From: Macrostomum lignano
Taxonomy: Eukaryota
Length of the DNA stretch: 64,000 nucleotides
Assembly: GCA_002269645.1 (NCBI GenBank)
Contig: NIVC01002467.1
Coordinates: 1-64,000, forward strand
Direction: 5' to 3'
Below, piece by piece: positions 22,059 to 45,381 of the stretch (within the stretch, counting starts at the first letter, position 1; every line of letters starts with the position of its first letter). Both the position numbers and the translations under genes were made by a program. Under the pieces are notes generated by a model. The model was not told the DNA's origin and ran no database searches. It saw only the letters and a list, made by a program, of their open reading frames with translations.

Positions 22059-22452
22059 CTCTCTACACGAACTGTAGAAGCTACCTGACGGTCTCATTCC
22101 GGTTGAATCGGAGAAGCTCTGCAAATATCCTTGGTCTACAAGTTTGCCTGATGGAGCCGGGATTCTGCGGCAGAAGCATGACTAATTTTGTGAGCATCTG
22201 CTACACCAGGCAAGATCTGCCATAAAATGTCACATTGCTACTCTCATGCGCTAATCTTACTCGCAGTAGTAAGCACTAGAGTCAATAATAAATATCATTG
22301 TATAGCGATAATTGTATAGCCTGAGCACCCGCAGCAAGGAGCCGCTGAGTCTCGCACAAAGGCTTCGCATCGGACTGTTCTATGAGCACAGGACCAAGAA
22401 GGTCAAGAAGGCCAACCTGTGCTCAGCTGGATACTAGCGGCTGCCCAGTCTC
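22058..22452 (+). pseudogene. Patchwork of three exon fragments homologous to the 17207-19185 gene
   Basis: 22058-22207 matches 17830-17980, 22321-22404 matches 18483-18566, and 22411-22450 matches 18902-18941. Confidence 0.85.
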
Positions 22453-22454
22453 GG

Positions 22455-22790
22455 ATTGGTTGGGGAGATGACTCTCTGATTGGTTGGGGAGATGACTCTC
22501 TGATTGGTTGGGGAGATGACTCTCTGATTGGCTGTGGAGGTGACTATCTGATTGGTTGGGGAGATGACTCTCTGATTGGTTGGGGAGATGACTCTCTGAT
22601 TGGTTGGGGAGATGACTCTCTGATTGGTTGGGGAGATGACTCTCTGATTGGTTGGGGAGATGACTCTCTGATTGGTTGGGGAGATGACTCTCTGATTGGT
22701 TGGGGAGATGACTCTCTGATTCGCTGTGGAGGTGACTCTCTGATTGGTTTGGGGGTGACGCTCTGATTGGTTGGGGAGATAACTCTGATT
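22455..22790. repeat. Minisatellite, 24 bp unit (same as 3365-3925)
   Basis: About 14 copies of CTGATTGGTTGGGGAGATGACTCT. Confidence 0.95.
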
Positions 22791-23359
22791 GCTTAGATAG
22801 GTTTTTCTATTTTAGATGACCAGCGCCTTGTCGGTTAAATAATCCAAAGTTACTATGTTCTCAATCAGATCTCAGTGTTTAAACGCAGATAGTTTTTATT
22901 GTTTAGTTTATTAATCTTGTCAGTTTTGTTGTTTTTTATGGAGCGCTAGGATCAACTTTGTTAAACGATAAGTTTTCTTGTTATAAAAGTACTTTGCTTG
23001 TTGAAAACTTCTGCACATTTCTTCGCTATTCCTATTTTGCCGTCGGAACATTCGTCAAATTGAAGCTTCTAAAATCTCCTTCATTTTTCGTTTTGTTTTT
23101 TTACGATTACCCATGCCATACCAACACGTCATTTTTACAACACTGACTTACTAATAGTAGGTAGCATCGATAGATTTTTATCAACGTAATTTATTTGAGG
23201 TTTTTGTCATAATAATAGTAGTAAACTAGCAATCTTCGCCCCCCGTTGGGGGACATCTGTATAGAATCTCTGCTCTCTACAAGTAACAAAAAGATAGCCA
23301 AATAAAGCATTCACAAAGAAAACAGACAAAATACTTAAATGAAGTGCAATGCAAAAAGA

Positions 23360-24125
23360 CAGCAAGCATCCCCCAGATAGCAAGCATCCCCCAGATTGCA
23401 AGCATCCCCCGGATAGCAAGCATCCCCCAGATAGCAAGCATCCCCCAGATAGCAAGCATCCCCCAGATAGCAAGCATCCCCCAGATAGCAAGCATCCCCC
23501 AGATAGCAAGCATCCCCCAGATAGCAAGCATCCCCCAGATAGCAAGCATCCCCCAGATAGCAAGCATCCCCCAGATAGCAAGCATCCCCCAGATAGCAAG
23601 CATCCCCCAGATTGCAAGCATCCCCCGGATAGCAAGCATCCCCCAGATAGCAAGCATCCCCCAGATAGCAAGCATCCCCCAGATAGCAAGCATCCCCCAG
23701 ATAGCAAGCATCCCCCAGATAGCAAGCATCCCCCAGATAGCAAGCATCCCCCAGATAGCAAGCATCCCCCAGATAGCAAGCATCCCCCAGATAGCAAGCA
23801 TCCCCCAGATAGCAAGCATCCCCAGATAGATAGCATCCCCCAAATAGCAAGCATCCCCCAGATAGCAAGCATCCCCAGATAGATAGCATCCCCCAAATAG
23901 CAAGCATCCCCCAGATAGCAAGCATCCCCAAGGTAGCAAGCACCCCCCAGATAGCAAGCATCCCCCAGATAGCAAGCACCCCCAGATAGCAAGGATCCCC
24001 CAGAAAGCAAGCATCCCCAAGATAGCAAGCTTCCCCCAGATAGCAAGCATCCCCCAGATAGCAAGCATCTTCCAGAGAGCAAGCTCCCCCAGATAGATAG
24101 CATCCCCAAATAGCAAGCATCCACC
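23360..24125. repeat. 18-bp satellite (CCCCCAGATAGCAAGCAT) in unit A
   Basis: About 42 copies; shorter or variant arrays at 27535-27720 and 31130-31760. Confidence 0.95.
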
Positions 24126-24219
24126 AGACAATAAGTAGCTAGTGCGACAATTTCCTTAGCATTATAGTGGCTCCTTTAAAATTCGCTTACTTTTACGTTT
24201 GAAATTGTGTATCTTTTAT

Positions 24220-26790
24220 GTTTGGCATGGTGGCTCTTTAATGTTTGACATGGTGGCCCTTTATGTTGACATGGTGGCTCTTTTATACTTGACATGGTGG
24301 CTCTTTACTGTTCGAAATGGTGGCTCTTTTATGTTTGACATGGTGGCTCTTTTAGGTTTGACATGATGGCACTATTATGTTTTGACATAGTGGCTCTTTA
24401 ATGTTTGACATGGTAGCTCTTAAATGTTTGACATGGTAGCTCTTAAATGTTTGACATGGTGGCTCTTTAATGTTTAACCTGGTGGCTCTTTTATGTTTTA
24501 CATGGTGGCTCTTTATTGTCTGACATGGTGGCTCTTTTATGTTTTACATGGTGGCTCCTTACGTTTGACACGGTGGCTCTCTAATGTTTGACATAGTGGC
24601 TATTTAATGTTCGAAATGGTGGCTCTTTAAAGTTTGACATAAAGTCACAAATATGTTTGAGATGGTGGCTCTTAAATGTTTGACATGGTGGCTCTTAAAT
24701 GTTTGACATGGTGGCTCTTTAATGTTCTTCATGGTGGCTCTTCAATATTCTACATGGTGGCTCTTTTATGTTCGACATGGTGGCTTTTTAATGTTTGACA
24801 TGGTGGCTCTTTTATGTTTGACATGGTGGCTCTTTACTGTTTGAAATGATGGCTCTTTAATGTTCTACATGGTAACTCTTTTATGTTTGATACGGTGGCT
24901 TTTTAATGTCTGACATGGTGGCTCTTTAATGTTTGACATGGGGGCTCTTCTATGTTTAACATGGTGGCTCTTAAATGTTTGACATGGTGGCTCTTTAATA
25001 TTCTACATGGTAACTCTTTTATGTTTGATACGGTGGCTTTTTAATGTCTGACATGGTGGCTATTTTATGTTTGAAATGGTGGCTCTTTTATGTTTGACAT
25101 GGTGGCTTTTTAATGTTTGACATGTTGGCTCTTTAATGTTAGACAAAGTGGCTTTTTAATGTTTGACATGGTGGCTCTTTTATGTTCGACATGGTGGCTT
25201 TTTACTGTTTGAAATGGTGGCTCTTTAATGTTCTACATGGTAACTCTTTTATGTTTGATACGGTGTCTTTTTAATGTCTGACATGGTGGCTATTTTATGT
25301 TTGACATGGTGGCTCTTCTATGTTTAACATGGTGGATCTTAAATGTTAGACACGGTGACTCTATAATGTTCAACATGGTGGCTCTTTAATTAATATTCTA
25401 TATGGTGGCTCTTTTTTGTTCGACATGGTGGCTTTTTTTGTTCTACATGGTAACTCTTTTATGTTTGATACGGTGGCTTTTTAATGTCTGACATGGTGGC
25501 TCTTAAATGTCTGACATGGTGGCTCTTAAATGTTTGACATGGTGGCTTTTTAATGTTTGACATGGTGGCTCTTTAATGTTAGACAAAGTGGCTTTTTAAT
25601 GTTTGACATGGTGGCTCTTTTATGTTTGACATGGTGGCTCTTTACTGTTTGAAATGATGGCTCTTTAATGTTCGAAATGGTGGCTCTTTTATGTTTGACA
25701 TGGTGGCTCTTTACTGTTTGAAATGATGGCTCTTTAATGTTCGAAATGGTGGCTCTTTTATGTTTGACATGGTGGCTCTTTACTGTTTGAAATGATGGCT
25801 CTTTAATGTTCGAAATGGTGGCTCTTTTATGTTTGACATGGTGGCTCTTTTAGGTTTGACATGATGGCACTTTTATGTTTTGACATAGTGGCTCTTTAAT
25901 GTTTGACATGGTAGCTCTTAAATGTTTGACATGGTAGCTCTTAAATGTTTGACATGGTAGCTCTTAAATGTTTGACATGGTAGCTCTTTTATGTTCAACA
26001 TGGTGGCTCTTTATTGTTTGACATGGTGGCTCTTTAATTTTTAACCTGGTGGCTCTTTTATGTTTGACACGGTGGCTTTTAATGTCTGACATGATGGCAC
26101 TTTTATGTTTTGACATAGTGGCTCTTTAATGTTTGACATGGTGGCTCTTAAATGTTTAACCTGGTGACTCTTTTATGTTTGACATGGCGGCTCTCTAATG
26201 TTTGACAAAGTGGCTATTTAATGTTCGAAATGGTGGCTCTTGAAAGTTTGACATAAAGTCCCATATATGTTTGAGATGGTGGCTCTTAAATGTTTGACAT
26301 GGTGGCTCCTAAATGTTTGACATGGTGGCTCTTTACTGTTTGAAATGGTGGCTCTTTAATGTTCTACATGGTAACTCTTTTATGTTCGACATGGTGGCTT
26401 TTTAATGTCTGACATGGTGGCTCCCAAATGTTTGACACGGTGGCTCTTTAATATTCCACATGGTGGCTCTTTTATGTTTGATACGGTGGCTTTTTAATGT
26501 TTGACATGGTGGCTCTTCTATGTTTAACATGGTGGCTCTTTTATGTTTGACACGGTGGCTCTTTAATGTTCGACAAAGTGGCTATTTGATGTTTGATATG
26601 GTGACACTTAAATGTTTGACATAAAGTCACATAAATGTTAGACGTGGTGGCTCGTTTAGTTTTGACATGGTGGCTTTTTAATCGTTGACATGGAGTCACG
26701 TATATGTTGGACATAGTGCTTATTTTATGTTTGGCATGGTGGCTCTTTTATGTTTGACATGGTGGCTCTTCTATGTTTGACATTCCGCTT
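24220..26790. repeat. 23-bp satellite (TTTGACATGGTGGCTCTTTTATG) in unit A
   Basis: More than 100 degenerate copies. Confidence 0.95.
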
Positions 26791-26855
26791 CTATTATGTT
26801 TAGCAGTTTTGTGTTTTTAAGGTGTTTTGATAAAAAAATTTTTTTGCACTACTAA

Positions 26856-26910
26856 GATTCGAACCCAGGTCGCTACATTAGCATTCCAGTCTGTTTGCAT
26901 CTTGGCTATC
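26856..26910 (-). promoter_or_regulatory. tRNA-derived (SINE-head-like) segment with Pol III A and B boxes in family-1 Helitron; homologues at ~30355-30408, ~34578-34632 and ~37345-37400
   Basis: Minus strand TAGCCAAGATG (A-box-like) lies ~43 nt before GGTTCGAATC (B box). Unit B has GGACTGCTAAT, resembling the tRNA-Ser(GCT) anticodon arm. No complete cloverleaf or acceptor stem. Confidence 0.7.
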
Positions 26911-27383
26911 TATTTTCAATTGGAGAACATGAATTGTGGCCCTTATAATTCAATTCTTACAGCAAGTCAATTGGAGTAAAAAGTTATGACATAATCAATT
27001 TCTCAGTCAGCCAGTATCAGTCTCAATTTGAGTTAGCAATATGGTTACGCAATTTCATTCAAGTCGTGTGTGCATTTCTTCGGCACTGTTTTCAACTTGT
27101 TGTGATGCAATCTTTATCACAATCGGAATTCAGCCAGTCAGTTTTTTCTCTAGCATTCTTACAATGAATTTTAGGTCGAAAGAGCTGCTTGACCTTTGCA
27201 AAAAAGCATGTTTTTCGAATATTTAATCCCTTTAACATTGAGCAATTTCTTAGCCAGGATGCATGTACCGTCCTAGGAAAATTTCCGATCGAATGGTGCA
27301 AGTTTGAAGAAAATCGGTTGAGCCGTTTTTTCTGGAATCTATCTCACACATACACACAGACATTTCATTTTTAGTATATAGGA

Positions 27384-30300
27384 CTAGCAATCTTCGCCCC
27401 CCCCCGTTGGGGGACATCTGGATAGAATCTCTGTTCTCTACAAGTAACAAAAAAACAGCCAAACAAAGCCTTCACAAAGACGACAGACAAACTGCTCGAA
27501 TAAAGTGTAATGCAAAAAGAAATCATCCCAAGACAGCAAGCATCCCCCCAGATAGCAAGCATCCCCCAGATTGAAAGCATCCCCCAGATAGCAAGCATCC
27601 CCCAGATTGCAAGCATCCCCCAGATAGCAAGCATCCCCCAGATAGCAAGCATCCCCCAGATAGGAAGCATCCCCCCTCCCGGATAGCAAGCATCCCCCAG
27701 ATAGCAAGCATCCCCAAATAGTAAGCATCCACCATACAATAAGTAGCTAGTGCTACAATTTCTTTAGCTCTGTAGTGGCTCCTTTAAAATTAGCATGACG
27801 CTTACTTTTACGTTTGAAATTGTGTAAATTTTATGTTTGACATGGCGGTTCTTTATGTTCGACATGGTGGCTCTTTTATGCTTGACATGGTGGTTCTTTA
27901 TGTTCGACATGGTGGCTCTTTTATGCTTGACATGGTGGCTCTTTACTGTTTGACATGGAGTCACATATATGTTTGACATGGTGGCTCTTTTATGTTCGAC
28001 ATGGTGGCTGTTTTATGTTTGACATGGTGGCTCCTTAATGTTTTACATGGTGGCTCTTGAATGTTTGACATGGTGGCTCTTTAATGTTTGACATGATGGC
28101 TCTTTAATGTTTGACATTGTGGCTCTTTTATGTTTGACATGGTGGCTCTTTGAATGTTTGACATGGTGGCTGTTTTATGTTTGACATGGTGGCTCTTTTA
28201 TGTTCGACATGGTGGCTCTTTTATGTTTGATATGGTGGCTCTTTTATGTTCGACATGGTGGCTCTTTTATGTTTGATATGGTGGCTCTTTTATAGTTGAC
28301 ATGGTGGCTCTTTTATGTTCGACATGGTGGCTCTTAAATGTTCGACATGGAGTCATATATATGTTTGACATGATGGCTCTTTTATGTTCGACATCGTGGC
28401 TCTTTTATGTTCGACATCGTGGCTCTTTTATGTTCGACATGGTGGCTCTTTTATGTTCGACATGGTGGCTCTTTTATGTTTGATATGGTGGCTCTTTTAT
28501 AATTGACATGGTGGCTCTTTTATGTTCGACATGGTGGCTCTTTAATGTTCGACATGGAGTCATATATATATGTTTGACATGGTGGCTCTTTTATGATTGA
28601 CATGGTGGCTCTTTTATGTTCGACATGGTGGCTCTTTAATGTTCGACATGGAGTCATATATATGTTTGACATGGTGGCTCTTTTATGTTTGACATGGTGG
28701 CTCTTTAATGTTCGAAATGGTGGCTCTTGAATGTTTGACATGGTGGCTCTTGAATGTTTGACATGATGCCTCTTTTATGTTTGACATGGTAGCTCTTTTA
28801 TGTTTGACTTGGTGGCTCTTTACTGTTTGACATGATGCCTCTTGAATGTTTGACATGGTAGGTCTTTAATGTTTGACATGGTAGCTCTTTAATGTTTGAC
28901 TTGGTGGCTCTTTAATGTTCGATATGGTGGCTCTTTAATGTTTGACATGGTGGTTCTTTAATGTTCGACATGGTGGCTCTTTTATGTCTGGCATGGTGGC
29001 TCTTTAATGTTCGACATGGTGGCTCTTTTATGTTTGGCATGGTGGCTCTTTCATGTTTGAGATGATAGCTCTTATATGTTTGACATGGTAGGTCTTTATT
29101 GTTTGACATGGTAGCTCTTTTATGTTTGACTTGGTGGCTCTTTAATGTTCGATATGGTGGCTCTTTTATGTTCGACATGGTGGCTATTTTATGTTTGACA
29201 TGGTGGCTCTTTTATGTTCGACATGGTGGCTCTTTTATTTTTGGCATGGTGGCTCTTTAATGTTTGACATGGTGTCTCTTGAATGTTTGACTTGGTGGCT
29301 CTTTAATGTTCGATATGGTGGCTCTTTAATGTTTGACATGGTGGTTTTTTAATGTTCGACATGGTGGCTCTTTTATGTTTGGCATGGTGACTCTTTAATG
29401 TTCAACATGGTGGCTCTTTAACATTTGACATGGTGGCTCTTAAATGTTTGGCATGGTGGCTCTTTAAAATTTGACATGGAGTCACCTATATGTTTGACAT
29501 AGTGGCTCTTGAATGTTCGACATGGTGGCTCTTGAATGTTTGACATGGTGGCTCTTTTATGTTCGACATGGTGGCTCTTGAATGTTTGACATGGTGGCTC
29601 TTGAATGTTTGACTTGGGGGCTCTTTAATGTTCGATATGGTGGCTCCTTAATTTTCAACATGTGGCTCTTTAATGTTCGACATGGTGGCTCTTTTATGTT
29701 TGGCATGGTGGCTCCTTAATGTTTCGCATGGTGGCTCTTTTATGTTTAACATGGTGGTCTTTTTATTTTTAACATGGCCTGGCTCTTTATTGTTCAACAT
29801 CGTGGCTCTTTAATGTTGAACATCGTGTTTATATAATGTTTGACATGGTGGCTCTTTAATATTTGACATGGTGGCTCTTTTATGTTTGGCATGGTGGTTC
29901 TTTAATGTTTGAAATGGTGGCTCTTTAATGCTTTACATGGTGGCTCTTTAATGTTTGACATGGAGTCATGTATATGTTTGACATGGAGGCTCTTTAATGT
30001 TTGACATGGTGGCTCTTTAATGTCTGACATGGAGTCACGTATATGTTTGACATGGAGTCACGTATATGTTTGACATGGAGTCACGTATATGTTTTACATG
30101 GTGGCTCTTTTATGCTTGACATGGTGGCTCTTTAATGTTCGAATGGTGGCTCTTTAATGTTCGACATGGTGGCTCTTTAAAGTCTGACATGGAGTCACGC
30201 ATATGTTTGACATTGAGTCATGTATATGTTTGACATGGTGGCTCTTTAATGTTTTAGATGGTTGGCTCTTTAATGTTTGACATTGCGCTTCCTCTATGTT

Positions 30301-30894
30301 TAGCTTTTTGTTTTTTAGGATGTTTTGATAAAAAAATTGTTTTGCACTACTAAGATTCGAACCTAGGTCGCTACATTAGCAGTCCAGTCTGTTCGCATCT
30401 AGGCTATCTCTTTTCAATTGGAGAACATGAACTGTTGCCCTTATAATTTAATTCTTATAGCAAGTCAATTAGAGTAAAAAGTTATGACACAATCAATTTC
30501 TCAGTCAGCCAGTATCAGTCTCAGTTCAAGTTAGCAATATTGGTTACGCAATTTAAATCAAGTCGTGTGTGCATTTCTTCGACACTGTTTTCAACTTGTT
30601 GTGATGCAATCTTTATCGGAATTGAAATTCAGCCAGTCAGGTTTTTCTCTAGCATTCTTACAATGCATTTTAAGTCAAAAATTTTGCTTGACCTTTGCAA
30701 AAAAGCATGTTTTTCGAATATTTAATCCCTTTAACATTGAGCAATTTCTTAGCCAAGATGCATGTACCATCCCAGGAAAATTTCTGATCAAATGGTGCAA
30801 GTTTGAAGAAAATCGGTTGAGCCAATTTTTCTGAAATCTATCGCATACCCACATACCCACATACCCACAGACAACTCATTTTTAGTATATTGGA
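27384..30894 (-). mobile_element. Helitron family-1 unit B
   Basis: 3' end nearly identical to unit A; 5' TCCAATATACTAAAAATG; contains an 18-bp array and a 23-bp array (27830-30290). Confidence 0.9.
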
Positions 30895-33800
30895 AGCAAT
30901 CTAGTGCGGCCCCCTTTCGGGGCGCCCAATAAGAAAGGAGCAAAAATAGTTCATGGAAAACAATAAAAAAACACATTTTCTTAAACACTAATTCCTTCTT
31001 CACATTTTAAAAATCACCTTATTCGTGTAAAATTGTCACGGACTAAGATGTTTGCAAAATTAAAAAATCACTTTTTCTCTAAAATTAACAAACAGTCAAC
31101 AAAATATCGTTTCCCTAAATAGAAAATATTCCCAAGACAGCAAGCAACCCCCTCCAAAAGTGAACAATCGCAGATAGCAAGCATCCTCTAATGCTCATAG
31201 CAAGAATCACCACAGATAGCAAGCATCTGCAGATTAGCAAGCACCCCCCAGATATTATAGAAGCATCCACCCAGATAGCAAGCATTCTGCAGATAGCAAG
31301 CATTCTGCAGATAGCAAGCACCCCCAGATATTATAGAAGCATTCTGCAGATAGCAAGCACCCCCAGATATTATAGAAGCATTCTGCAGATAGCAAGCACC
31401 CCCAGATATTATAGAAGCATTCTGCAGATAGCAAGCACCCCCAGATATTATAGAAGCATTCTGCAGATAGCAAGCACCCCCAGATATTATAGAAGCATTC
31501 TGCAGATAGCAAGCACCCCCAGATATTATAGAAGCATTCTGCAGATAGCAAGCACCCCCCAGATATTATAGAAGCATCCACCCAGATAGCAAGCATCCTG
31601 CAGATAGCAAGAATCCCTAAATAGCAAGCATCCTGCAGATAGCAAGAATCCCTGAATAGCAAGCATCCCTGGATAGAAAGAATCCCATGCATGTAGCCAG
31701 TACCCCCTCTCCCAAATAGCAAGTATCCCCCTCGAGAGCAAGCATCCACGAGACAGCAAGTAGCTAGTGCAAATGTTACTTCCGCTAATGCAATAATCGC
31801 TTTCTCAGGTTGTGCAACAATCCACGTCTCAGCGAGCGCAATAATCTCTTTTTTAGACAGCGCAGTAATCAGCTTCTCAGCTAGTGCAATAATCCTTGGT
31901 TTATTAATAGCAATAATCCTTGATTAATCAAGTACAATAATCCTTGGTTTATCAAGTGCAATAATCCTTGGTTTATCAAGTGCAGTAATCTTTGGCTTAT
32001 AAAGTGCAATAATCCTTGGTTTATCAAGTGCAATAATCCTTTGTTTATCAAGTGCAATAATCCTTGGTTTATCAAGTGCAATAATCCTTGGTTTATTAAG
32101 TGCAATAATCCTTGGTTTATTAAGTGCAATAATCCTTGGTTTATCTAGTGCAGTAATCCTTGGCTTATCAGGTGCAATAATCCTTGGTTTATCAAGTGCA
32201 ATATTTGTTTATCAAGTGCAATAATCCTTGGTTTATCAAGTGAAATAATCCTTGGTTTATCAAGTGCAATAATCCTTGGCTTATCAACTGCAATAATCCT
32301 TGGTTTATCAAGCGCAGTAATCTTTGGCCTATCAAGTGCAATATTCCTTGGTTTATCAAGTGCAGTAATCCTTGGCCTATCAAGTGCAATAATCCTTGGT
32401 TTATCAAGTGTAATAATCCTTGGTTTATCAAGTGCAATAATCCTTGGCTTATCAACTGCAATAATCCTTGGTTTATCAAGTGCAATAATCCTTGGTTTAT
32501 CAAGCGCAGTAATCCTTGGCCTATCAAGTGCAATAATCCTTGGCTTATCAAGTGCAATAATCCTTGGTTTATCAAGTGCAATAATCCTTGGTTTATCAAG
32601 TGCAGTAATCCTTGGCCTATCAAGTGCAATAATCCTTGGTTTGCCAAGAGCAATAATCCTTAGTTTATCGAGTGCAGTAATCCTTAGTTTTCCAAGTGCA
32701 GTAATCCTTGGTTTATTAAGAGCAATAATCCTTGGCTTATCGAGTGCAGTAATCCTTGGTTTGCCAAGAGCAATAATCCTTGGTTTATCAAGTGCAATAA
32801 TCCTTGGTTTATCAAGTGCAATAATCCTTGGTTTATCAAGTGCAATAATCCTTGGTTTATCAGATGCAATAATCCTTGGCTTATCAACTGCAATAATCCT
32901 TGGTTTATCAAGTGCAATAATCCTTGGCTTATCAAGTGCAATAATCCTTGGTTTATCAAGTGCAATAATCCTTGGTTTATCAAGCGCAGTAATCTTTGGC
33001 CTATCAAGTGCAATAATCCTTTGTTTATCAAGTGCAATAATCCTTGGTTTATCAAGTGCAATAATCTTTGGTTTATCAGATGCAATAATCCTTGGCTTAT
33101 CAACTGCAATAATCATTGGTTTATCAAGTGCAATAATCCTTGGCTTATCAAGTGCAATAATCCTTGGTTTATCAAGTGCAATAATCCTTGGTTTATCAAG
33201 CGCAGTAATTTTTGGCCTATCAAGTGCAATAATCCTTGGTTTATCAAGTGCAGTAATCCTTGGCCTATCAAGTGCAATAATCCTTGGTTTATCAAGTGCA
33301 ATAGTCTTTGGTTTATCGAGTGCAGTAATCCTTAGTTTTCCAAGTGCAGTAATCCTTGGTTTATTAAGAGCAATAATCCTTGGTTTATCGAGTGGAGTAG
33401 TCCTTGGTTTATTAATATCAATAATCCTTGAATAATCCAGTGCATTAATCCTTGGCTTATCAAGTGCAACATTCTTTACTATCAAGTGCAATAATCCATG
33501 GCTTATCAAGTGCAATAATCCTTGGCTTATCAAGTGCAATAATCCTTGGTTTATCAAGTGCAATAATCCTTTGTTTATCAAGTGCAATAATCCTTTGTTT
33601 ATCAAGTGCAATAATCCTTTGTTTATCAAGTGCAATAATCCTTGGTTTATCAAGCGCAGTAATCCTTGGCTTATCAAGTGCAATAATCCTTGGTTTATCA
33701 AGTGCAATAATCCTTGGTTTATCAAGCGCAGTAATCTTTGGCCTATCAAGTGCAATAATCCTTGGTTTATCAAGTGCAGTAATCCTTGGCCTATCAAGTG

Positions 33801-35187: not shown

Positions 35188-37866
35188 CTAGCAATCTACG
35201 CCCCCCGTTGGGGAGCCAGAGAAATGCAATACACGTTTTTTTAATAAGCTACATGTATCCTTGAAATCTTAAAAAATCTCCTGTCAAACCTTGTAAGCCT
35301 TGACATGTCAGTAATTCCCCCCACAAGCTTTAACATATCAACTTCCCCCCTTGACATCTCAGCAATGCCTCCAATAAGCCTTGGAAATCTAAAAATATCT
35401 GTCAACCTTCTAACCCTAACCCTAGCCTAACCCTAACCCTAACCTAACCCTAAAGCATTGAAATTTCAGTAATTCTCTCTAAGAGTCATTATAGCACTAC
35501 TACAGCATTATAGCGATTCCCTGCAAGCCTCGACATCGTAGGGATTCCCAAATGAATCTCTTAACTTCAACATGAAGCTTCTTTTATTTTTTACATTACG
35601 CTTTTTTAATTAGCGATCCCTCCCCTGAGGAGGCATCAAATAATGTAATAAAAAGTTTTCAATAAACTACATGTAGCTTCTGACTTTAGCCTTGAAATCT
35701 CATTTATACCCTCGTGAGCCTTGACATCTCAGCTATTCCCCCCTTAAGCCTTGACATGTCAGCGATGGCCCCCCATAAACCTTGAAATCTAAAAAATCCC
35801 GTTAACCTTGAAACCCGATAAAATATAACCCTCAACCCACACCTTACCTAAACCTAACTTTAACCCAACCTAAAGCCTTGAAATCTCAGCAATTCTTCTC
35901 CCCTAAGCCTTGACATTTTAGTGATTCCTTCTTTAAGAATCACAGCACTTTAACGATTTCCACCTAGCTTTGACATCGTAGCAATTCCCAAATGAATCTT
36001 TTAACTTGAACATGACTTTTCTATTATGTATACATAGTGCTACTTTTATTTTTTACATGACTCTTCTTCTATCAGCGCCCCCCCCGTGGCGAGCCAACAA
36101 AGAATGCAATAAAAAAATTGAGTAAAGTACATTAACTTTGAATTAGCTTCTGACTTTTGCTTTGACATCTCAGAACCCCACCCCCCGTAATCTCAGTTAT
36201 TCTCCGTGAGCCTTTACGTCTCAGTTTTTCTCCCCAGCACAGCATTATAGCTGCATTTATTTTTAGATGACACCCTTCATGTCTGACATGACGCTTCTTT
36301 TATTCTACCATGATGCTTCTTAATTTTTTAAATGACACTTTTATTAGTTTTTACATGACGCTTCTATGATTTTTTTACATGACGCTTCTATGATTATTTA
36401 CATGACGCTTCTATGATTTTTTTACATGACGCTTCTATGATTGTTTACATGACGCTTCTCTGATTTTTACATGACGCTTCTATGATCTTTTACATGACGC
36501 TTCTATGATTGTTTACGTGACGCTTCTATGATTTTTACATGACGCTTCTATGATTTTTTACATGACGCTTCTATGATTTTTACATGACGCTTCTATGATT
36601 GTTTACATGACGCTTCTATGATTTTTTTTACATGACGCTTCTATGATTGTTTACACGACGCTTCTATGATTTTTACATGACGCTTCTATGATTGTTTACA
36701 TGACGCTTCTATGATTTTTTAAATGACGCTTCTATGATTTTTATATGACGCTTCTACGATTTTTTACATGACGCTTCTATGATTGTTTACATGACGCTTC
36801 TATGATTTTTTACATGACGCTTCTATGATTTTTACATGACGCTTCCATGATTGTTTACATGACGCTTCTATGATTGTTTACATGACGCTTCTATGATTTT
36901 TATATGACGCTTCTACGATTTTTTACATGACTCTTCTATGATTGTTTACATGACGCTTCTATGATTGTTTACATGACGCTTCTATGATTGTTTACATGAC
37001 GCTTCTATGATTTTTATATGACGCTTCTACGATTTTTTACATGACGCTTCTATGATTGTTTACATGACGCTTCTATGATTTTTTATATGACGCTTCTATG
37101 ATTTTTACATGACGCTTCCATGATTGTTTACATGACGCTTCTATGATTGTTTACATGACGCTTCTATGATTTTTATATGACGCTTCTATGATTGTTTACA
37201 TGACGCTTCTATGATTGTTTACATGACGCTTCTACGATTTTTTACATGACGCTTCTATGATTTTTACATGACGCTTCCTTTTAAAAAGTCTTTTAGTTTT
37301 CCTGACGTTGAAAAGCTTTAATTAAAAAAATTATACTCTATGAAAATTCGAATCATCGTCGCTGCATTTAGCAGTTCAGTTTGTTCACCTCTAGGCTAGC
37401 TCTCATCGTTTTGATAACATCAAATTTTTCACTTATTTAATTCAACACTTTAAAATCCAAGCATAGAGTAAATCACACGAAGCAGTTATGACATAATCAG
37501 TTTCTCAGTCAAAACAAAATTTTCATTTTTAGTATTTAGGATATGGTTACGCAATTTAAATCAAGTCTGGTGCTACGCTTCCACACTGCATTTTCAATTC
37601 AAGTCGGAGTTACAATTCAGTTATGATGCAATCTATTTCAGAATCAGAATTCAACCAGTCAGTTTTTTCTCTAGCATTCTTACAATGCATTTCAAGTCGA
37701 AAAGTTTGCTTGACCTTTGCAAAAAAGTATGTTTTTCGAATATTTAATGCCTTTAGCATCGAGCAATTTCTTAGCCACGATGCATGTACCGTCACGGGAA
37801 AATTTCTGATCGAACAGTGCAAGTTCGAACAAAATCGGTCCAGCCATTTTTTCTCTAATCGATCAC

Positions 37867-37899
<33 letters not shown>

Positions 37900-37925
37900 C
37901 ACAGACAGACCATTTTTAGTATATA
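35188..37925 (-). mobile_element. Helitron family-1 unit D
   Basis: 3' CCCCAACGGGGGGCGTAGATTGCTAG; 5' TATATACTAAAAATGG followed by (TCTA)n; head homologous to units A-C. Confidence 0.85.
36340..37280. repeat. ~22-24 bp satellite (TTTACATGACGCTTCTATGATT) in unit D
   Basis: About 40 copies. Confidence 0.95.
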
Positions 37926-40900
37926 CGAGGCCAACTCCTCCTCTGGAGGAGAAAGGGGAAGAACTCCCATCACCTGAATTCCATTCCCTGAAATCCATCA
38001 GCTGAAATTCCATGACTTGAATTCCATCTTCCAAATCATCTCCAAATCCTCTGTAAAGCCTTTCAAATACCATATCTTGTTTTCCCTGTTCGCAAAAACT
38101 GACTGCCATTGTCCAGACTCAGATTCTTCTGTCTCCTCTCTTCTCTTTTCTCTCCTCTCACGTCTCTCATCTCTACCACCTTATTTATCTCTTCTCCCTC
38201 GTCTTTCGTCTTTCTCTCCTGTCTCCTTTATCCCCTGTTTTCTCCTCTCTCCTCTCTCATCTCTCATCCCTCATGCCTCATCTCACTATTTCTTTCTCCT
38301 CTACTCTCAGCTCCTCTCTTCTCTCTCCTCTCATCTTTCCTGTCTCCCTCTGCTATCTCATATCTTCCCTCTCATCTCCTCTCTCCTCTTTTCTTCTCTC
38401 TCCCTCTTCGTTCCCGCCTTACTCCCCTCTTCTCTCCCATCTGTCATGTCTAATCTGTCCTCTCTCATCTCTACTCTCTTTTCTATAATCTCTTCTCTCT
38501 TCTCTTTTCACTCTTCTCTTTACTCTCTTTACTGACTGAAGATACCAAATCCATCAAAATCCCTCCGTGAAACAGAAATCCTCTCCGCGAAACAGAAATC
38601 CTCTCCGCGAAACAGAAATCCTCTCCGCGAAACAGAAACCCTCTCCGTGAAACTGGACTCCTTTCGAAATCCAATCCGCCAAACAGAAATCCTCTCCGTG
38701 AAACTGGGCTCCATGGAAATCCTCTGAGTGAAACTGACATCCATCAAAATCGTCTCCGTAAAACAGAAATACATCTAGATTCTCTCCACGAAAAAGAAAT
38801 CCTCTCCGTGAAACCGAAAACCATCAGAATACTCCGTGAAACTGGACTCAATCGAAATTTTCTCTGTCAAAAAGAACTTAACTCTCAGAATTTATTGGTT
38901 AGGGTTAGGGTTCGAGCTGCACAGAGCTGCGTGTTGAATTAATTGAATCAATTAATTGCGCAAACCATTTCTCAGTCAGACAGTATCAGTCTTATTTAAA
39001 GTTAAATAAACGGTTGCGCAATCTAAATCAACCCTCCAATACGCAGCGGCAGACCCCCTTCCAATACGCCCAACTTTATCTATTACGTCTCGCAAAACTG
39101 AGTACAATTTTTGCAGAAAGTTAAAAGTATGGAAATAGTTTTTTAAATGCTGTGCTTTTTCTTTTCATATTTAAAGCAAACAACTTATATCCCCGAACTC
39201 AGCGTTGCAAGATCTTTCCAGCAATATAAGTTTCTCCTCTCAAAGTTTAAAACTCGAGGAACAGTTAGCGTTTGAAATTTACCAATTTCCCGACTGCTTG
39301 CTAAGTTGCTAGAGAAGCTCGCAAGTTTATTCATTGAATTTCACTGCCAAACTAATACACAGGGCTGCCTATGGAAAAAAGGCGCCAATAATAAAACCAA
39401 ATGAATCTCGACACAGTCTATCTATTCACACTGTACAACTGCTATGTACACTCAGCCCAAGCCCAACCCCCGTTCTGGGTTAAGCATTAAATTTAACTCA
39501 GCCCCCCAACACGCGGGGGTTTTATTTGCATTGAACCCAGAACACGCGCACCCACCACCCCTCAATACACAGCGGCTCGCGGGCGGAGGTTGGGGTGGCT
39601 ATTTTTACAAACTGGCTGCAGCCCCAGTCAGAGTGGCCAAAGAAGGTTATTGGGGGTTAAAAAAGCAGTTTTCTGCTTTTTTAGGGATGTTAAAATGTGA
39701 AAATTAAAAATTAAAATAGCCTAAAGCCTGCTCCGGAAAATTTGCAGTTTTCCCATATAAGTTTCGACGCTGACTTGGCAGAATTGTAGGAGTTCACTTA
39801 ATGCATACAGACAGACAGACAAACATCGCGTCAGTTTTAGTATTAGGACGAGGCCAACTCCTCCTCTGGAGGAGAAAGGGGAAGAACTCCCATCACCGGA
39901 ATTCCATTCCCTGAAATCCATCAGCTGAAATTCCATGACTTGAATCCCATCTTCCAAATCATCTCCAAATCCTCTGTAAAGCCTTTCAAATACCATATCT
40001 TGTTTTCCCTGTTCGCAAAAACTGACTGCCATTGTCCAGACTCAGATTCTTCTGTCTCCTCTCTTCTCTTTTCTCTCCTCTCACGTCTCTCATCTCTACC
40101 ACCTTATTTATCTCTTCTCCCTCGTCTTTCGTCTTTCTCTTCTGTCTCCTTTATCCCCTGTTTTCTCCTCTCTCCTCTCTCCTCTCTTCTCTCCTCTCTC
40201 ATCTCTCATCCCTCATGCCTCATCTCACTATTTCTTTCTCCTCTACTCTCAGCTCCTCTCTTCTCTCTCCTCTCATCTCTCCTGTCTCCCTCTGCTATCT
40301 CATATATTCCCTCTCATCTCCTCTCTCCTCTTTTCTTCTCTCTCCCTCTTCGTTCCCGCCTTACTCCCCTCTTCTCTCCCATCTGTCATGTCTAATCTGT
40401 CCTCTCTCATCTCTACTCTCTTTTCTATAATCTCTTCTCTCTTCTCTTTTCACTCTTCTCTTTACTCTCTTTACTGACTGACTGAAGATACCAAATCCAT
40501 CAAAATCCCTCCGTGAAACAGAAATCCTCTCCGCGAAACAGAAATCCTCTCCGTGAAACTGGGCTCCATGGAAATCCTCTGAGTGAAACTGACATCCATC
40601 AAAATCGTCTCCGTAAAACAGAAATACATCTAAATTCTCTCCACGAAAAATAAATCCTCTCCGTGAAACCGAAAACCATCAGAATACTCCGTGAAACTGG
40701 ACTCAATCGAAATTTTCTCTGTCAAAAAGAACTTAACTTTCAGAATTCATTGGTTAGGGTTAGGGTTCGAGCTGCACAGAGCTGCGTGTTGAATTAATTG
40801 AATCAATTAATTGCGCAAACCATTTCTCAGTCAGACAGTATCAGTCTTATTTAAAGTTAAATAAACAGTTGCGCAATCTAAATCAACCCTCCAATACACA

Positions 40901-43900
40901 GCAGCAGTGAGAAGTTGAACCCTCCCCCAACTTTATCTATTACGTCTCGCAAAACTAAGTACAATCTTTGCAGAAAGTTAAAAGTATGAAAATAGTTTTT
41001 CAAATGCTGTGCTTTTTCTTTTCATATATAAAGCAAACAACTTATATCCCCAAACTCAGCGTTGCAAGATCTTTCCAGCAATATAAGTCTCTCCTCTCAA
41101 AGTTTAAAACTCGAGGAACAGTTAGCGTTTGAAATTTACCGATTTCCCGACTGCTTGCTAGAGAAGCTCGCAAGTTTATTCATTGAATTTCACTGCCAAA
41201 CTAATACACAGGGCTGCCAATAATAAAACCAAATGAATCTCGACACAGTCTATCTATTTACACTGTACAACTGCTATGTACACTCAGCCCAAGCCCAACC
41301 CCCGTTCTGGGGGAATCATTAAATTTAACTCAACCCCCCAACAGGCGGGGGTTTTATTTGCATTGAACCCAGAACACGCGCACCCACCACCCCTCAATAC
41401 ACAGCGGCCCGCGGGCGGAGGTTGGGGTGGCTATTTTTACAAACTGGCTGCAGCCCCAGTCAGAGTGGCCAAAGAAGGTTATTGGGGGTTAAAAAAGCAG
41501 TTTTCTGCTTTTTTAGGGATGTTAAAATGTGAAAATTAAAAATTAAAATAGCCTAAAGCCTGCTCCGGAAAATTTGCAGTTTTCCCATATAAGTTTCGAC
41601 GCTGACTTGGCAGTATTGTAGGAGTTCACTTGCTACATACAGACAGACAGACAGACAGACAAACATCGCGTCAGTTTTAGTATTAGGAGGAGGACGAGGC
41701 CAACTCCTCCTCTGGAGGAGAAAGGGGAAGAACTCCCATCACCGGAATTCCATTCCCTGAAATCCATCAGCTGAAATTCCATGACTTGAATCCCATCTTC
41801 CAAATCATCTCCAAATCCTCTGTAAAGCCTTTCAAATACCATATCTTGTTTTCCCTGTTCGCAAAAACTGACTGCCATTGTCCAGACTCAGATTCTTCTG
41901 TCTCCTCTCTTCTCTTTTCTCTCCTCTCACGTCTCTCATCTCTACCACCTTATTTATCTCTTCTCCCTCGTCTTTCGTCTTTCTCTTCTGTCTCCTTTAT
42001 CCCCTGTTTTCTCCTCTCTCCTCTCTCCTCTCTTCTCTCCTCTCTCATCTCTCATCCCTCATGCCTCATCTCACTATTTCTTTCTCCTCTACTCTCAGCT
42101 CCTCTCTTCTCTCTCCTCTCATCTCTCCTGTCTCCCTCTGCTATCTCATATATTCCCTCTCATCTCCTCTCTCCTCTTTTCTTCTCTCTCCCTCTTCGTT
42201 CCCGCCTTACTCCCCTCTTCTCTCCCATCTGTCATGTCTAATCTGTCCTCTCTCATCTCTACTCTCTTTTCTATAATCTCTTCTCTCTTCTCTTTTCACT
42301 CTTCTCTTTACTCTCTTTACTGACTGACTGAAGATACCAAATCCATCAAAATCCCTCCGTGAAACAGAAATCCTCTCCGCGAAACAGAAATCCTCTCCGT
42401 GAAACTGGGCTCCATGGAAATCCTCTGAGTGAAACTGACATCCATCAAAATCGTCTCCGTAAAACAGAAATACATCTAAATTCTCTCCACGAAAAATAAA
42501 TCCTCTCCGTGAAACCGAAAACCATCAGAATACTCCGTGAAACTGGACTCAATCGAAATTTTCTCTGTCAAAAAGAACTTAACTTTCAGAATTCATTGGT
42601 TAGGGTTAGGGTTCGAGCTGCACAGAGCTGCGTGTTGAATTAATTGAATCAATTAATTGCGCAAACCATTTCTCAGTCAGACAGTATCAGTCTTATTTAA
42701 AGTTAAATAAACAGTTGCGCAATCTAAATCAACCCTCCAATACACAGCAGCAGTGAGAAGTTGAACCCTCCCCCAACTTTATCTATTACGTCTCGCAAAA
42801 CTAAGTACAATCTTTGCAGAAAGTTAAAAGTATGAAAATAGTTTTTCAAATGCTGTGCTTTTTCTTTTCATATATAAAGCAAACAACTTATATCCCCAAA
42901 CTCAGCGTTGCAAGATCTTTCCAGCAATATAAGTCTCTCCTCTCAAAGTTTAAAACTCGAGGAACAGTTAGCGTTTGAAATTTACCGATTTCCCGACTGC
43001 TTGCTAGAGAAGCTCGCAAGTTTATTCATTGAATTTCACTGCCAAACTAATACACAGGGCTGCCAATAATAAAACCAAATGAATCTCGACACAGTCTATC
43101 TATTTACACTGTACAACTGCTATGTACACTCAGCCCAAGCCCAACCCCCGTTCTGGGGGAATCATTAAATTTAACTCAACCCCCCAACAGGCGGGGGTTT
43201 TATTTGCATTGAACCAGAACACGCGCACCCACCACCCCTCAATACACAGCGGCCCGCGGGCGGAGGTTGGGGTGGCTATTTTTACAAACTGGCTGCAGCC
43301 CCAGTCAGAGTGGCCAAAGAAGGTTATTGGGGTTAAAAAAGCAGTTTTCTGCTTTTTTAGGGATGTTAAAATGTGAAAATTAAAAATTAAAATAGCCTAA
43401 AGCCTGCTCCGGAAAATTTGCAGTTTTCCCATATAAGTTTCGACGCTGACTTGGCAGTATTGTAGGAGTTCACTTGCTACATACAGACAGACAGACAGAC
43501 AGACAAACATCGCGTCAGTTTTAGTATTAGGACGAGGCCAACTCCTCCTCTGGAGGAGAAAGGGGAAGAACTCCCATCACCGGAATTCCATTCCCTGAAA
43601 TCCATCAGCTGAAATTCCATGACTTGAATCCCATCTTCCAAATCATCTCCAAATCCTCTGTAAAGCCTTTCAAATACCATATCTTGTTTTCCCTGTTCGC
43701 AAAAACTGACTGCCATTGTCCAGACTCAGATTCTTCTGTCTCCTCTCTTCTCTTTTCTCTCCTCTCACGTCTCTCATCTCTACCACCTTATTTATCTCTT
43801 CTCCCTCGTCTTTCGTCTTTCTCTTCTGTCTCCTTTATCCCCTGTTTTCTCCTCTCTCCTCTCTCCTCTCTTCTCTCCTCTCTCATCTCTCATCCCTCAT

Positions 43901-45381
43901 GCCTCATCTCACTATTTCTTTCTCCTCTACTCTCAGCTCCTCTCTTCTCTCTCCTCTCATCTCTCCTGTCTCCCTCTGCTATCTCATATATTCCCTCTCA
44001 TCTCCTCTCTCCTCTTTTCTTCTCTCTCCCTCTTCGTTCCCGCCTTACTCCCCTCTTCTCTCCCATCTGTCATGTCTAATCTGTCCTCTCTCATCTCTAC
44101 TCTCTTTTCTATAATCTCTTCTCTCTTCTCTTTTCACTCTTCTCTTTACTCTCTTTACTGACTGACTGAAGATACCAAATCCATCAAAATCCCTCCGTGA
44201 AACAGAAATCCTCTCCGCGAAACAGAAATCCTCTCCGTGAAACTGGGCTCCATGGAAATCCTCTGAGTGAAACTGACATCCATCAAAATCGTCTCCGTAA
44301 AACAGAAATACATCTAAATTCTCTCCACGAAAAATAAATCCTCTCCGTGAAACCGAAAACCATCAGAATACTCCGTGAAACTGGACTCAATCGAAATTTT
44401 CTCTGTCAAAAAGAACTTAACTTTCAGAATTCATTGGTTAGGGTTAGGGTTCGAGCTGCACAGAGCTGCGTGTTGAATTAATTGAATCAATTAATTGCGC
44501 AAACCATTTCTCAGTCAGACAGTATCAGTCTTATTTAAAGTTAAATAAACAGTTGCGCAATCTAAATCAACCCTCCAATACACAGCAGCAGTGAGAAGTT
44601 GAACCCTCCCCCAACTTTATCTATTACGTCTCGCAAAACTAAGTACAATCTTTGCAGAAAGTTAAAAGTATGAAAATAGTTTTTCAAATGCTGTGCTTTT
44701 TCTTTTCATATATAAAGCAAACAACTTATATCCCCAAACTCAGCGTTGCAAGATCTTTCCAGCAATATAAGTCTCTCCTCTCAAAGTTTAAAACTCGAGG
44801 AACAGTTAGCGTTTGAAATTTACCGATTTCCCGACTGCTTGCTAGAGAAGCTCGCAAGTTTATTCATTGAATTTCACTGCCAAACTAATACACAGGGCTG
44901 CCAATAATAAAACCAAATGAATCTCGACACAGTCTATCTATTTACACTGTACAACTGCTATGTACACTCAGCCCAAGCCCAACCCCCGTTCTGGGGGAAT
45001 CATTAAATTTAACTCAACCCCCCAACAGGCGGGGGTTTTATTTGCATTGAACCCAGAACACGCGCACCCACCACCCTCAATACACAGCGGCCCGCGGGCG
45101 GAGGTTGGGGTGGCTATTTTTACAAACTGGCTGCAGCCCCAGTCAGAGTGGCCAAAGAAGGTTATTGGGGGTTAAAAAAGCAGTTTTCTGCTTTTTTAGG
45201 GATGTTAAAATGTGAAAATTAAAAATTAAAATAGCCTAAAGCCTGCTCCGGAAAATTTGCAGTTTTCCCATATAAGTTTCGACGCTGACTTGGCAGTATT
45301 GTAGGAGTTCACTTGCTACATACAGACAGACAGACAGACAGACAAACATCGCGTCAGTTTTAGTATTAGGAGGAAGGAGGA
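37926..45381 (-). mobile_element. Four tandem Helitron family-2 units (37926-39848, 39849-41694, 41695-43532, 43533-45381; ~1.84-1.92 kb each)
   Basis: Each has 5' (TCC)nTAATACTAAAACTGACGCGATGTTTG(TCTG)n and a 3' perfect hairpin CTCCTCC-AGA-GGAGGAG followed by TTGGCCTCG. Units 2-4 are near-identical; unit 1 is more diverged. Internal GA-rich tract, 20-bp repeats and GGTTAGGGTTAGGG. Confidence 0.85.

Follow-up and report, generated by a model that had tools for sequence, protein, structure and literature searches.

Evidence that a 22-kb satellite-like block in Macrostomum lignano is a head-to-tail stack of eight non-autonomous Helitrons

Abutting, unlike Helitrons in head-to-tail order have already been published, as pairs, for maize and for the bat Myotis. 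In maize, such adjacent elements were read as consecutive insertions (Du et al. 2008, BMC Genomics 9:51; PMC2267711), and one of the two models proposed for the pair treats the host A and the 5' T of the resident element as a canonical AT target (PMC2267711). In Myotis lucifugus, HelibatN tandem arrays and abutting Helitrons have perfect head-to-tail junctions, as does the locus described here; the arrays are mostly of one family and are ascribed to rolling-circle concatemerisation (Pritham & Feschotte 2007, as cited in PMC2267711; Grabundzija et al. 2016, PMC4778049), a process that in our case fits three units only (A1-A3). Non-CTRR 3' ends formed de novo (CTTG, CTAC, AATG) are documented for Helraiser and for Helibat in Myotis and have a likely counterpart here (PMC4778049). 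In addition, circular Helitron intermediates carry the same CTAG/TC joint as the junctions reported below, where a slash marks the bond between two units or between unit and host (PMC4778049). The locus, located in a 64,000-nt stretch of the Macrostomum lignano genome (hereafter the window), is an unusually long new case of this arrangement, and the novelty implied by the original prediction, made from the same DNA, is reduced by the maize (2008, PMC2267711) and Myotis (PMC4778049) precedents.

Our analysis supports the view that a 22-kb satellite-like block consists of eight stacked non-coding, minisatellite-carrying Helitrons in one A/T target (Table 1). The series runs uninterrupted on the minus strand from 45381 to 23226, the 3' end of each unit abutting the next 5' end, and contains four A units, two B1 units (B1 and B1'), B2 and B3, hence at least four subfamilies. 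These have a common 5' terminus, TCC[W2-3]ATACTAAAA, and are unlike elsewhere. Mini- or microsatellites are found within every unit. All units share a single orientation, for which the probability is 2^-7 for the seven further units under random orientation. Tandem repeats detected with TRF make up 62.7% of the train versus 30.3% of the remainder of the window. We observed directly the termini, the exact joining of 3' to 5' ends and one paralogue in which the site is empty. The original prediction of eight minus-strand units joined without spacer had the right count, although a tally of 5' ends would misplace the boundaries; its two families become at least four subfamilies (A, B1, B2, B3).

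Table 1 Coordinates of the train, its units and internal features, and the host repeat in the window
Feature	Position	Strand	Description
Whole train	23226..45381	-	22,156 bp; eight head-to-tail non-autonomous Helitron-like units, one A/T site
Unit A1	43533..45381	-	1849 bp; 5' end TCCTCCTTCCTCCTAATACTAAAAC adjoining host A; 3' hairpin CTCCTCC-AGA-GGAGGAG then TTGGCCTCG
Unit A2	41695..43532	-	1838 bp; 5' end TCCTAATAC; zero substitutions vs A1, A3
Unit A3	39849..41694	-	1846 bp; 5' end TCCTCCTCCTAATAC; zero substitutions vs A1, A2 outside 5' (TCC)n tract
Unit A4	37926..39848	-	1923 bp; 43 substitutions in ~1806 aligned nt (2.4%), with indels, vs A1-A3
Unit B3	35188..37925	-	2738 bp; starts TATATACTAAAAATGG, without 5' TCC; 3' hairpin then GCGTAGATTGCTAG
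31-nt patch in B3	37511..37541	-	Mimics perfect 5' terminus (A/TCCTAAATACTAAAAATGA...); not a unit junction
B3 internal repeats	37277-36286; 35453-35410	-	23-mer array; (TTAGGG)n run
Unit B2	30895..35187	-	4293 bp; 5' end TCCATATAC; 3' hairpin CGCCCC-GAAA-GGGGGCCG then CACTAGATTGCT, terminal AG missing
B2 internal repeats	34504-31883; 31686-31170	-	24-mer array, ~110 copies; 17/39-mer arrays from GGGGGATGCTTGCTATC motif
Unit B1	27384..30894	-	3511 bp; 5' end TCCAATATAC; 3' hairpin then GCGAAGATTGCTAG
B1 internal repeats	30283-27829; 27734-27527	-	23-mer array, ~107 copies; 18-mer array
Unit B1'	23226..27383	-	4158 bp; 5' end TCCTATATAC; 3' hairpin CCCCC-AAC-GGGGG then GCGAAGATTGCTAG, adjoining host T
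B1' internal repeats	26801-24190; 24128-23357	-	23-mer array, ~113 copies; 18-mer array, 43 copies
Host repeat, left half	22449..23225	+	24-mer array TCTGATTGGTTGGGGAGATGAC plus unique sequence
Host repeat, right half	45382..45549	+	Flank matching paralogue
Host repeat, uninterrupted paralogue	3374..4471	+	Empty site about 4289/4290 (A/T)

The train is a single interruption of an older host repeat. On the minus strand, its outer 5' end reads host A/TCCTCC... at 45382/45381 (plus-strand 45382 is T), and its outer 3' end reads ...GATTGCTAG/T at 23226/23225 (plus-strand 23225 is A). Both ends are exactly where the original prediction had placed them, and the flanks carry no target-site duplication. 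Elsewhere in the window, 3492-4280 corresponds to the left flank (22449-23217; 81.6% identity over 801 bp, E=0) and 4293-4465 to the right flank (45386-45541; 78% identity over 173 bp, E=5e-33). Once joined, the flanks align with the uninterrupted paralogue at 3924-4471 (447 identical columns out of 562, 79.5%), the break falling at A/T, about 4289/4290 of the paralogue; the match is far longer than the 40 nt first noticed (4269-4308). Insertion between A and T without duplication, which is assessable at the two outer ends of the train only, is found there, the joined flanks being colinear with the paralogue. These outer ends and the empty-site paralogue bear out the proposal that the satellite-like third of the window is one filled insertion site.

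At the internal boundaries, all three originally quoted junctions match the minus strand exactly: GATTGCTAG/TCCTATATAC at 27384/27383, GATTGCTAG/TCCATATAC at 35188/35187 and GGCCTCG/TCCTAATAC at 39849/39848. Two of the seven internal junctions are inexact. A4/B3 (37926/37925), absent from the quoted set, reads CTCG/TATATAC with the B 5' TCC missing, and B2/B1 reads GATTGCT/TCC with the 3' AG missing. Hence, seven of the eight units begin with TCC; the exception, B3, begins with TATATAC because its TCC was lost. The B 3' terminal 18-mer GGGGGCGWAGATTGCTAG occurs three times in the window, versus 0.04 expected.

A mis-assembly, either by mis-joining of repeats or by false expansion or collapse of A1-A3, could be suspected in a region that is 63% tandem repeat and where A1-A3 differ only in homopolymer length, as is typical of consensus errors from long reads. 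However, the junctions fall to the base on ends that make biological sense, the paralogue contains the two flanks as one continuous sequence and the B units are divergent enough to be assembled unambiguously, which makes an artefact very improbable.

Canonical Helitron hallmarks are present: 5' TC, a hairpin followed by CTAG in B units, an A/T target without duplication and no terminal inverted repeats. A short G+C-rich hairpin lies 9-14 nt before the 3' end (CCCCC-AAC-GGGGG at 13-14 nt in B, CTCCTCC-AGA-GGAGGAG at 9 nt in A). Minimum-free-energy folding of the last 50 nt recovers these hairpins, with modest 50-mer z-scores (-0.3 to -1.9). The search for terminal inverted repeats (first 40 versus last 100 nt) found none, the longest inverted match being 4-7 nt. 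Among the expected termini (5' TC, 3' hairpin plus CTRR), hairpins are found in A and B units and CTAG ends B1', B1 and B3; B2 ends ...GATTGCT, the homologous end minus AG, and the four A units depart from the expectation, ending with CTCG after the hairpin. This A end always lies against the next 5' end, which alone defines it, and never against host DNA; it is probably a weaker terminus formed de novo (hairpin plus CTCG).

Assignment to Helitron2/Helentron was considered and rejected: the target is A/T and not T/T, B units have no ATIRs, and A1 has only a 7-nt complement, TCCTCCT, to the 3' hairpin arm. The ORF list of the window contains no RepHel-like ORF. ORFs within the train are repeat-encoded, and a Pfam search with nine of the non-repeat ORFs returned only HIBADH, sorting-nexin and weak reverse-transcriptase fragments. 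No copies of the train units were found in the other 42 kb of the window, and two metagenome scans gave 0 matches.

The units differ in how closely they are related. In A1-A3, differences are limited to the length of the 5' (TCC)n tract and to three homopolymer-length differences. A4 is, from its substitutions, an older copy. For the B units, identity of the 5' module is 92% between B1 and B1', 89% between B2 and the first 384 nt of B3, and 78-80% between B2 and B1/B1'. These units are thus 8-22% apart in their common 5' module, their central minisatellites are unrelated and, outside the last ~30 nt, the 3' tails of B3, B2 and B1/B1' cannot be aligned; therefore, they are different elements, too unlike to form a concatemer of one monomer. 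A homogenised one-monomer satellite or macrosatellite array was also rejected as a description of the locus, since homogenised copies are restricted to A1-A3 and the other units range from 1.9 to 4.3 kb (1.9-4.3 kb overall) and have different internal arrays and 3' tails. The original argument against a one-monomer concatemer therefore holds for the train as a whole but not for A1-A3, where the absence of substitutions means that concatemerisation or unequal crossing-over could well account for the stretch.

For the entire locus, a rival explanation without repeated insertion is that one or two Helitrons inserted once and were then multiplied by unequal crossing-over or replication slippage, with divergence and minisatellite turnover in place. 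The adjacency of three substitution-free A copies and the shared architecture of B1 and B1' are consistent with such an expansion, and tandem duplication of a dimer would keep exact 3'/5' junctions. Nevertheless, B3, B2 and B1 look like different family members rather than diverged duplicates, given their unrelated central arrays and their tails alike only terminally, and A and B 3' ends are unrelated. In addition, since the (TCC)n length differs among A1-A3, the A1/A2 and A2/A3 junctions are not mere duplicates of one another, as they would be if copied by unequal crossing-over. We consider this explanation improbable.

One sequence in B3 resembles a further 5' terminus. The 5'-end motif at 37541 was rejected as a unit boundary: it is internal to full-length B3, and the patch replaces exactly 31 nt of a B module conserved in B2, B1 and B1'.

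Chance cannot account for eight units from at least four subfamilies at a single phosphodiester bond; such a number implies end-directed integration or composite formation. In our view, the best explanation, to which we give a probability of roughly 55%, is serial same-orientation insertion at the 5' boundary of the resident element, together with local amplification of A. The first element, B1', would have landed in a host AT. The junction between host A and the T of the resident 5' TC would then again make a canonical AT target, and it would also be the bond normally nicked by the RepHel transposase at the start of transposition. B1, B2, B3, A4 and then A1-A3 would each have integrated at this same bond, so that CTAG/TC junctions and a youngest-at-5' order would result. 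The three substitution-free A copies would be very recent, and may derive from repeated insertion from one source, rolling-circle read-through producing a concatemer, or unequal crossing-over; a concatemer would be expected to have uniform junctions, against which the variable (TCC)n argues. The TCC and AG losses at two junctions would reflect imprecise end processing or later deletion.

The order of divergence fits this scheme. Between same-subfamily neighbours, compared with each other and not with a consensus, divergence falls towards the 5' end (B1'-B1 8-12%, B2-B3 11%, A4-A3 2.4%, A1-A3 0), as growth at the 5' side would predict and opposite to what growth at the 3' side would. The latter would proceed by non-canonical insertion at the G/T bond between the resident CTAG and host T, making A1 the oldest unit and B1' the youngest. 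The G/T bond is the other bond cleaved by the transposase, this is one of two models for the maize head-to-tail pair (PMC2267711), and the junction sequences alone are compatible with both directions. On the other hand, G/T is not the preferred Helitron target (PMC4778049), and the 5' units show zero (A1-A3) or 2.4% (A4) substitutions against 8-12% for the 3'-end pair B1/B1'; an oldest-at-5' order would hold only if A had recently been homogenised or duplicated. We consider this direction of growth unlikely. Any model, however, would yield the same gradient if A had recently been duplicated locally at the 5' end.

The stack, or large parts of it, may instead have been built elsewhere and arrived in one event, either by end-bypass transposition, starting at the leftmost 5' end and finishing at the rightmost 3' end, or by integration of a heteromultimeric circle. 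There is a single pair of host junctions, both canonical; read-through past weak 3' ends and composite Helitrons are both documented (PMC4778049), and the CTCG end of A could be such a weak terminator. Arrival in one event, however, only shifts the question of how unlike elements came to abut, and the steps of 0%, 2.4% and 8-12% imply that at least the addition or duplication of the A copies took place long after the B units had diverged. A 22-kb Helitron would also be large, though not unprecedented. We therefore regard this origin, too, as having little probability.

The apparent age gradient favours integration at the 5' junction. A more general proposal, which we put forward tentatively, is that resident 5' junctions (host A/TC), being the transposase's own nicking site, are preferred targets and generate polar, chronologically ordered trains, youngest at the 5' end. 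Trains of this kind would preserve a record of successive waves of family activity and, if genome-wide data bear this out, could be used to order this activity in time. They would also be a natural assay of RepHel target choice and, under the same condition, would make it worthwhile to test junction targeting directly with a reconstructed transposase. Overall, the locus indicates that a large satellite-like block can arise by transposition and not by array expansion alone. For annotation, repeat maskers would class most of the region as simple or satellite repeat, and its transposon structure would go unnoticed.

The train is an unusually informative natural example for the unsettled question of how head-to-tail junctions between unlike Helitrons originate. 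Helitron-derived tandem arrays, and non-autonomous Helitron/Helentron elements that consist mostly of a minisatellite or satellite array and occur in local clusters or arrays, are known as Heli2Xen in Xenopus (PMC12001565) and Cg_HINE in Crassostrea (PMC7492417), and from Hydractinia (PMC11934779) and the Drosophila Y (PMC9248874). Several of these are Helitron2/Helentron elements with other ends and targets, whereas the train has canonical Helitron1-type ends and an A/T target; their arrays are of one family, whereas the train is mixed. FoHelis of Fusarium oxysporum acquire multiple 5' termini by self-insertion, so that one element has another 5' terminus inside it (PMC5148889), as B3 has the motif at 37541. 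However, FoHelis are non-canonical, with Helitron2-like ends (PMC5148889), and self-insertion does not explain the inner terminus of B3, which replaces part of the conserved module and adds nothing. In the maize pair, as in the train, two unlike elements meet at a G/T junction where CTAG, the 3' end of one, is followed at once by TC, the 5' end of the other, and no host A intervenes (PMC2267711). The maize case comprises two elements carrying gene fragments and had presence/absence alleles (PMC2267711), whereas the train, known from one assembled sequence, brings together in one site eight elements that carry minisatellites, belong to at least four subfamilies and show an apparent age gradient.

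The eight units of the train, a head-to-tail series of Helitron-like elements at 23226-45381, all lie in the same orientation; their boundaries were set by unit-versus-unit Blast and by tandem repeat finder (TRF) runs on each unit. The 5'-end motif of the units is TCC[W2-3]ATACTAAAA and the 3' motif a hairpin...CTAG. Every such motif reported in the original prediction was recovered on the minus strand from 45381 to 23226, and the three junctions that it quoted are exact (3/3). At the 5' outer end of the train, a host A precedes TCCTCC... (45382/45381); at the 3' outer end, ...GATTGCTAG is followed by T (23226/23225). The flanking plus-strand bases are A at 23225 and T at 45382. Mis-assembly of the train is a rival to reading these abutments as biological joints.

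Location of the train units and of the coding features in the window
Feature	Position	Strand	Description
A1	45381-43533	minus	about 1.84 kb; GA-rich, with 20-30-mer repeats
A2	43532-41695	minus	repeats like A1
A3	41694-39849	minus	repeats like A1
A4	39848-37926	minus	older copy of A, 1.92 kb
B3	37925-35188	minus	23-mer array and TTAGGG run
B2	35187-30895	minus	~110-copy 24-mer array; arrays derived from GGGGGATGCTTGCTATC motif
B1	30894-27384	minus	~107-copy 23-mer array and 18-mer array
B1'	27383-23226	minus	~113-copy 23-mer array and 18-mer array
3-hydroxyisobutyrate dehydrogenase exon	2708-3100	plus	Pfam
Reverse-transcriptase fragment	14032-14541	plus	Pfam
210-aa ATG-initiated ORF	46562-47194	plus	1.2 kb from train; Tyr/Pro/Arg-rich C-terminus (YYWPRYYYYPYELYPRYY)
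Sorting-nexin exon	51214-51744	minus	Pfam
Sorting-nexin exon	54136-54630	minus	Pfam

The train splits an older host repeat, made of a 24-mer array plus ~550 bp, of which an uninterrupted paralogue is present in the window. The left flank (22449-23217) is 81.6% identical to 3492-4280 over 801 bp, and the right flank (45386-45541) is 78% identical to 4293-4465 over 173 bp. When the flanks are joined and aligned locally to 3924-4471, 447 of 562 columns are identical and the break falls at an A|T in the paralogue (~4289|4290) with zero duplicated bases, in agreement with the proposed single site without target site duplication. On this alignment, the paralogue shows that the whole 22,156 bp interrupts a single point. 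Arrival of the composite in one step is a rival account of this arrangement. Because the paralogue is ~20% diverged from the split repeat, it represents a second copy of the older repeat and not an allele. Related minisatellites based on AGCACCAAGGGG are observed on both sides of the split repeat, at 20661-22053 and 46090-46314 (a 16-mer, 87 copies, 98% match, and a 40-mer, 5 copies). They suggest that the host repeat may itself be nested in an older array-bearing element.

Minisatellites are very abundant in this eukaryotic window: TRF masks 26,560 of its 64,000 bases (41.5%). Dozens of unrelated 16-151-nt minisatellites are seen, some of them between the sorting-nexin exons (51931-53059, 53519-54118); with the masked fraction, this makes the richness a property of the genome and not just of the train. 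The 3-hydroxyisobutyrate dehydrogenase (HIBADH) exon matches Pfam NAD_binding_11 and NAD_binding_2, and the sorting-nexin exons match the Vps5 BAR domain, with a weak PX match below the Pfam cutoff; the reverse-transcriptase fragment is also weak and below the cutoff. The best match of the HIBADH exon, at 66% identity, is an Ancora sagittata transcript (TSA GHVO; the source is a gregarine of a polychaete), which may be host contamination, and a sorting-nexin exon has a single database match at 36% identity. With closest protein matches at 36-66% identity, the searched database therefore holds no close relative of the organism. Pfam gave no match for the 210-aa ORF beside the train, and no called gene on record corresponds to it. 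Two pairs of inverted duplicates, 4796-5481 versus 11380-12068 (99.1% identity, 690 bp) and 9795-10301 versus 12880-13393 (97.9% identity, 514 bp), carry a ~135-150-aa ORF (MPPKKSALGRFTAAARRWRS...) without a Pfam match. Their probable origin is another mobile element, of which they would be young copies, or a recent inverted duplication. Rfam, applied to the window with the gathering threshold as cutoff, gave no match.

Within the train, A and B units share the 5' terminus, followed by a (TCTG)n or (TG)n microsatellite, as well as a ~72-nt internal module. Their 3' ends are distinct: B units end in CCCCC-AAC-GGGGG followed by GCGAAGATTGCTAG, and A units in CTCCTCC-AGA-GGAGGAG followed by TTGGCCTCG. 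Folding the terminal 50 nt as DNA recovers both hairpins in the minimum-free-energy structures. Shuffles predict 0.04 occurrences of the B 3'-terminal 18-mer, against 3 observed, and a generic search for hairpins that precede CTRR, the canonical Helitron 3' end, and T gave 6 hits versus 1.6 expected, the B ends alone being convincing. A further Helitron-3'-end-like structure, which could be due to chance, lies at 13559-13577 on the plus strand (hairpin CTGGC-CTC-GCCAG, then GT and CTAG|TC), where it abuts TC. The A family ends in CTCG and so departs from CTRR. An alternative parse, in which A would end at ...GGCC and TCG would open the next unit, was rejected as less parsimonious, since GGCCTCG recurs in each of the four A copies, A4 beside B3 included. 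An internal hairpin with CTGA in A units (44968, 43130, 41284) was set aside as a bypassed ancestral 3' end, the next base being G and not T. The A hairpin with CTCG looks like a de novo 3' end, by analogy with those known from Helraiser/Helibat (CTTG, CTAC and AATG; PMC4778049).

No terminal inverted repeats were found in the units. No RepHel-like (Helitron transposase) ORF is present in the window's ORF list or was detected by Pfam on nine selected ORFs, and the units are therefore non-autonomous. Structural hallmarks alone place them, putatively, in the Helitron superfamily. Metagenome scans for other copies of B, with its 3' end and with its conserved 5' module, returned 0 matches each. 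Telomere-type repeats were also observed: about 7.7 TTAGGG copies near the 3' end of B3 (35410-35453, minus strand) and, in opposite orientation, a short CCCTAA run in each A unit (~44436-44451, 42598-42613, 40752-40767, minus strand).

Two B units have altered ends. The A4|B3 junction (37926/37925) reads CTCG|TATATAC, so B3 has lost its TCC, and B2 ends in GATTGCT, with AG missing, directly before the TCC of B1. Inside B3, a 5'-end-like motif at 37541 is not a junction, as 37925-35188 aligns gaplessly across it. We considered a train of nine pieces with a nested insertion, 37925-37542 being a 3'-truncated B fragment and 37541-35188 a separate element at an internal A|T. This reading was rejected because B3 is colinear, without a gap, with full-length B2, B1 and B1' through this point and because 37511-37541 (minus strand) is an exact 31-for-31-nt replacement of module sequence that A and the remaining B units conserve (TTGCTAACTCAAATTGAGACTGATACTGGCT in B1'). 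The patch reads as a perfect Helitron 5' terminus with an A before it, and may constitute a second start site in B3. A decayed ancestral second 5' end of all B units is not supported either: in B2, B1 and B1', another internal stretch matches the 5'-end consensus better than the homologous segment does, and this segment is not notably 5'-end-like. An equal-length replacement is explained neither by self-insertion nor by an inner terminus of ancestral origin.

Comparison of the units upholds the proposed mixed composition and revises the count from two families to at least four subfamilies (A, B1, B2 and B3). Over the shared B 5' module, identity is 92% between B1 and B1', 78-80% between B2 and B1/B1', and 89% between B2 and the first 384 nt of B3. 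In their 3' tails, B3, B2 and B1/B1' have just the final ~30 nt in common; B1 and B1' agree at 88% over their last 140 nt. No relationship links the central arrays of B3, B2 and B1/B1'. Hence, as predicted, a concatemer of one monomer cannot account for these differing modules, tails and arrays. At the other end of the train, A1-A3 show zero substitutions over ~1838 bp, their only differences being in 5' (TCC)n tract length (TCCTCCTTCCTCC, TCC and TCCTCCTCC; 45381-45363, 43532-43524 and 41694-41680, minus strand) and in three homopolymer lengths, while A4 differs from them by 43 substitutions (2.4%) plus indels. Same-subfamily members are adjacent, an arrangement for which duplication in place followed by divergence is a rival explanation. 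Overall, neighbour divergence drops from 3' to 5': 8-12% at the 3' end, then 2.4%, then no substitutions.

Chance cannot place eight elements at one bond in the same orientation, so end-directed joining of some form is required. By analogy, we favour growth at the 5' junction, the second of the models in Du et al. (PMC2267711). With an element resident in AT, the A of the host together with the T of its 5' TC would again form a canonical AT; the HUH mechanism, as PMC4778049 summarises it, leads us to infer that the same bond is the one nicked by RepHel to start transposition. Because host A|TC would be both canonical target and nick site, later elements could integrate there, giving CTAG|TC joints with the youngest unit at the 5' end. 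The divergence gradient fits such 5'-side growth and contradicts the rival, growth on the 3' side at the G|T bond. The A1-A3 triplet could derive from repeated insertion, circle read-through or unequal crossing-over; the unequal (TCC)n tracts speak against one junction simply having been copied. TCCTCCT is reverse-complementary to AGGAGGA, the right arm of the hairpin at the A 3' end. Each A|A junction can therefore fold into an alternative hairpin, and slippage or imprecise joining may be connected with this.

Same-family head-to-tail Helitron arrays are known from bats, Drosophila, plants, Xenopus and Hydractinia, and multiple 5' termini are on record for Fusarium Helitrons. Helitrons are also said to favour insertion near other Helitrons (Yang & Bennetzen 2009, as cited in PMC12477314). 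In the open-access literature text, no published train was found to combine so many unlike units at a single site. Unlike Helitrons do abut in maize, as one pair (PMC2267711), and in Myotis, as individual cases (PMC4778049); compared with these, the arrangement of the train is the known one, here long and mixed. The locus thus adds a long, mixed case to those already described and is no new type of element.
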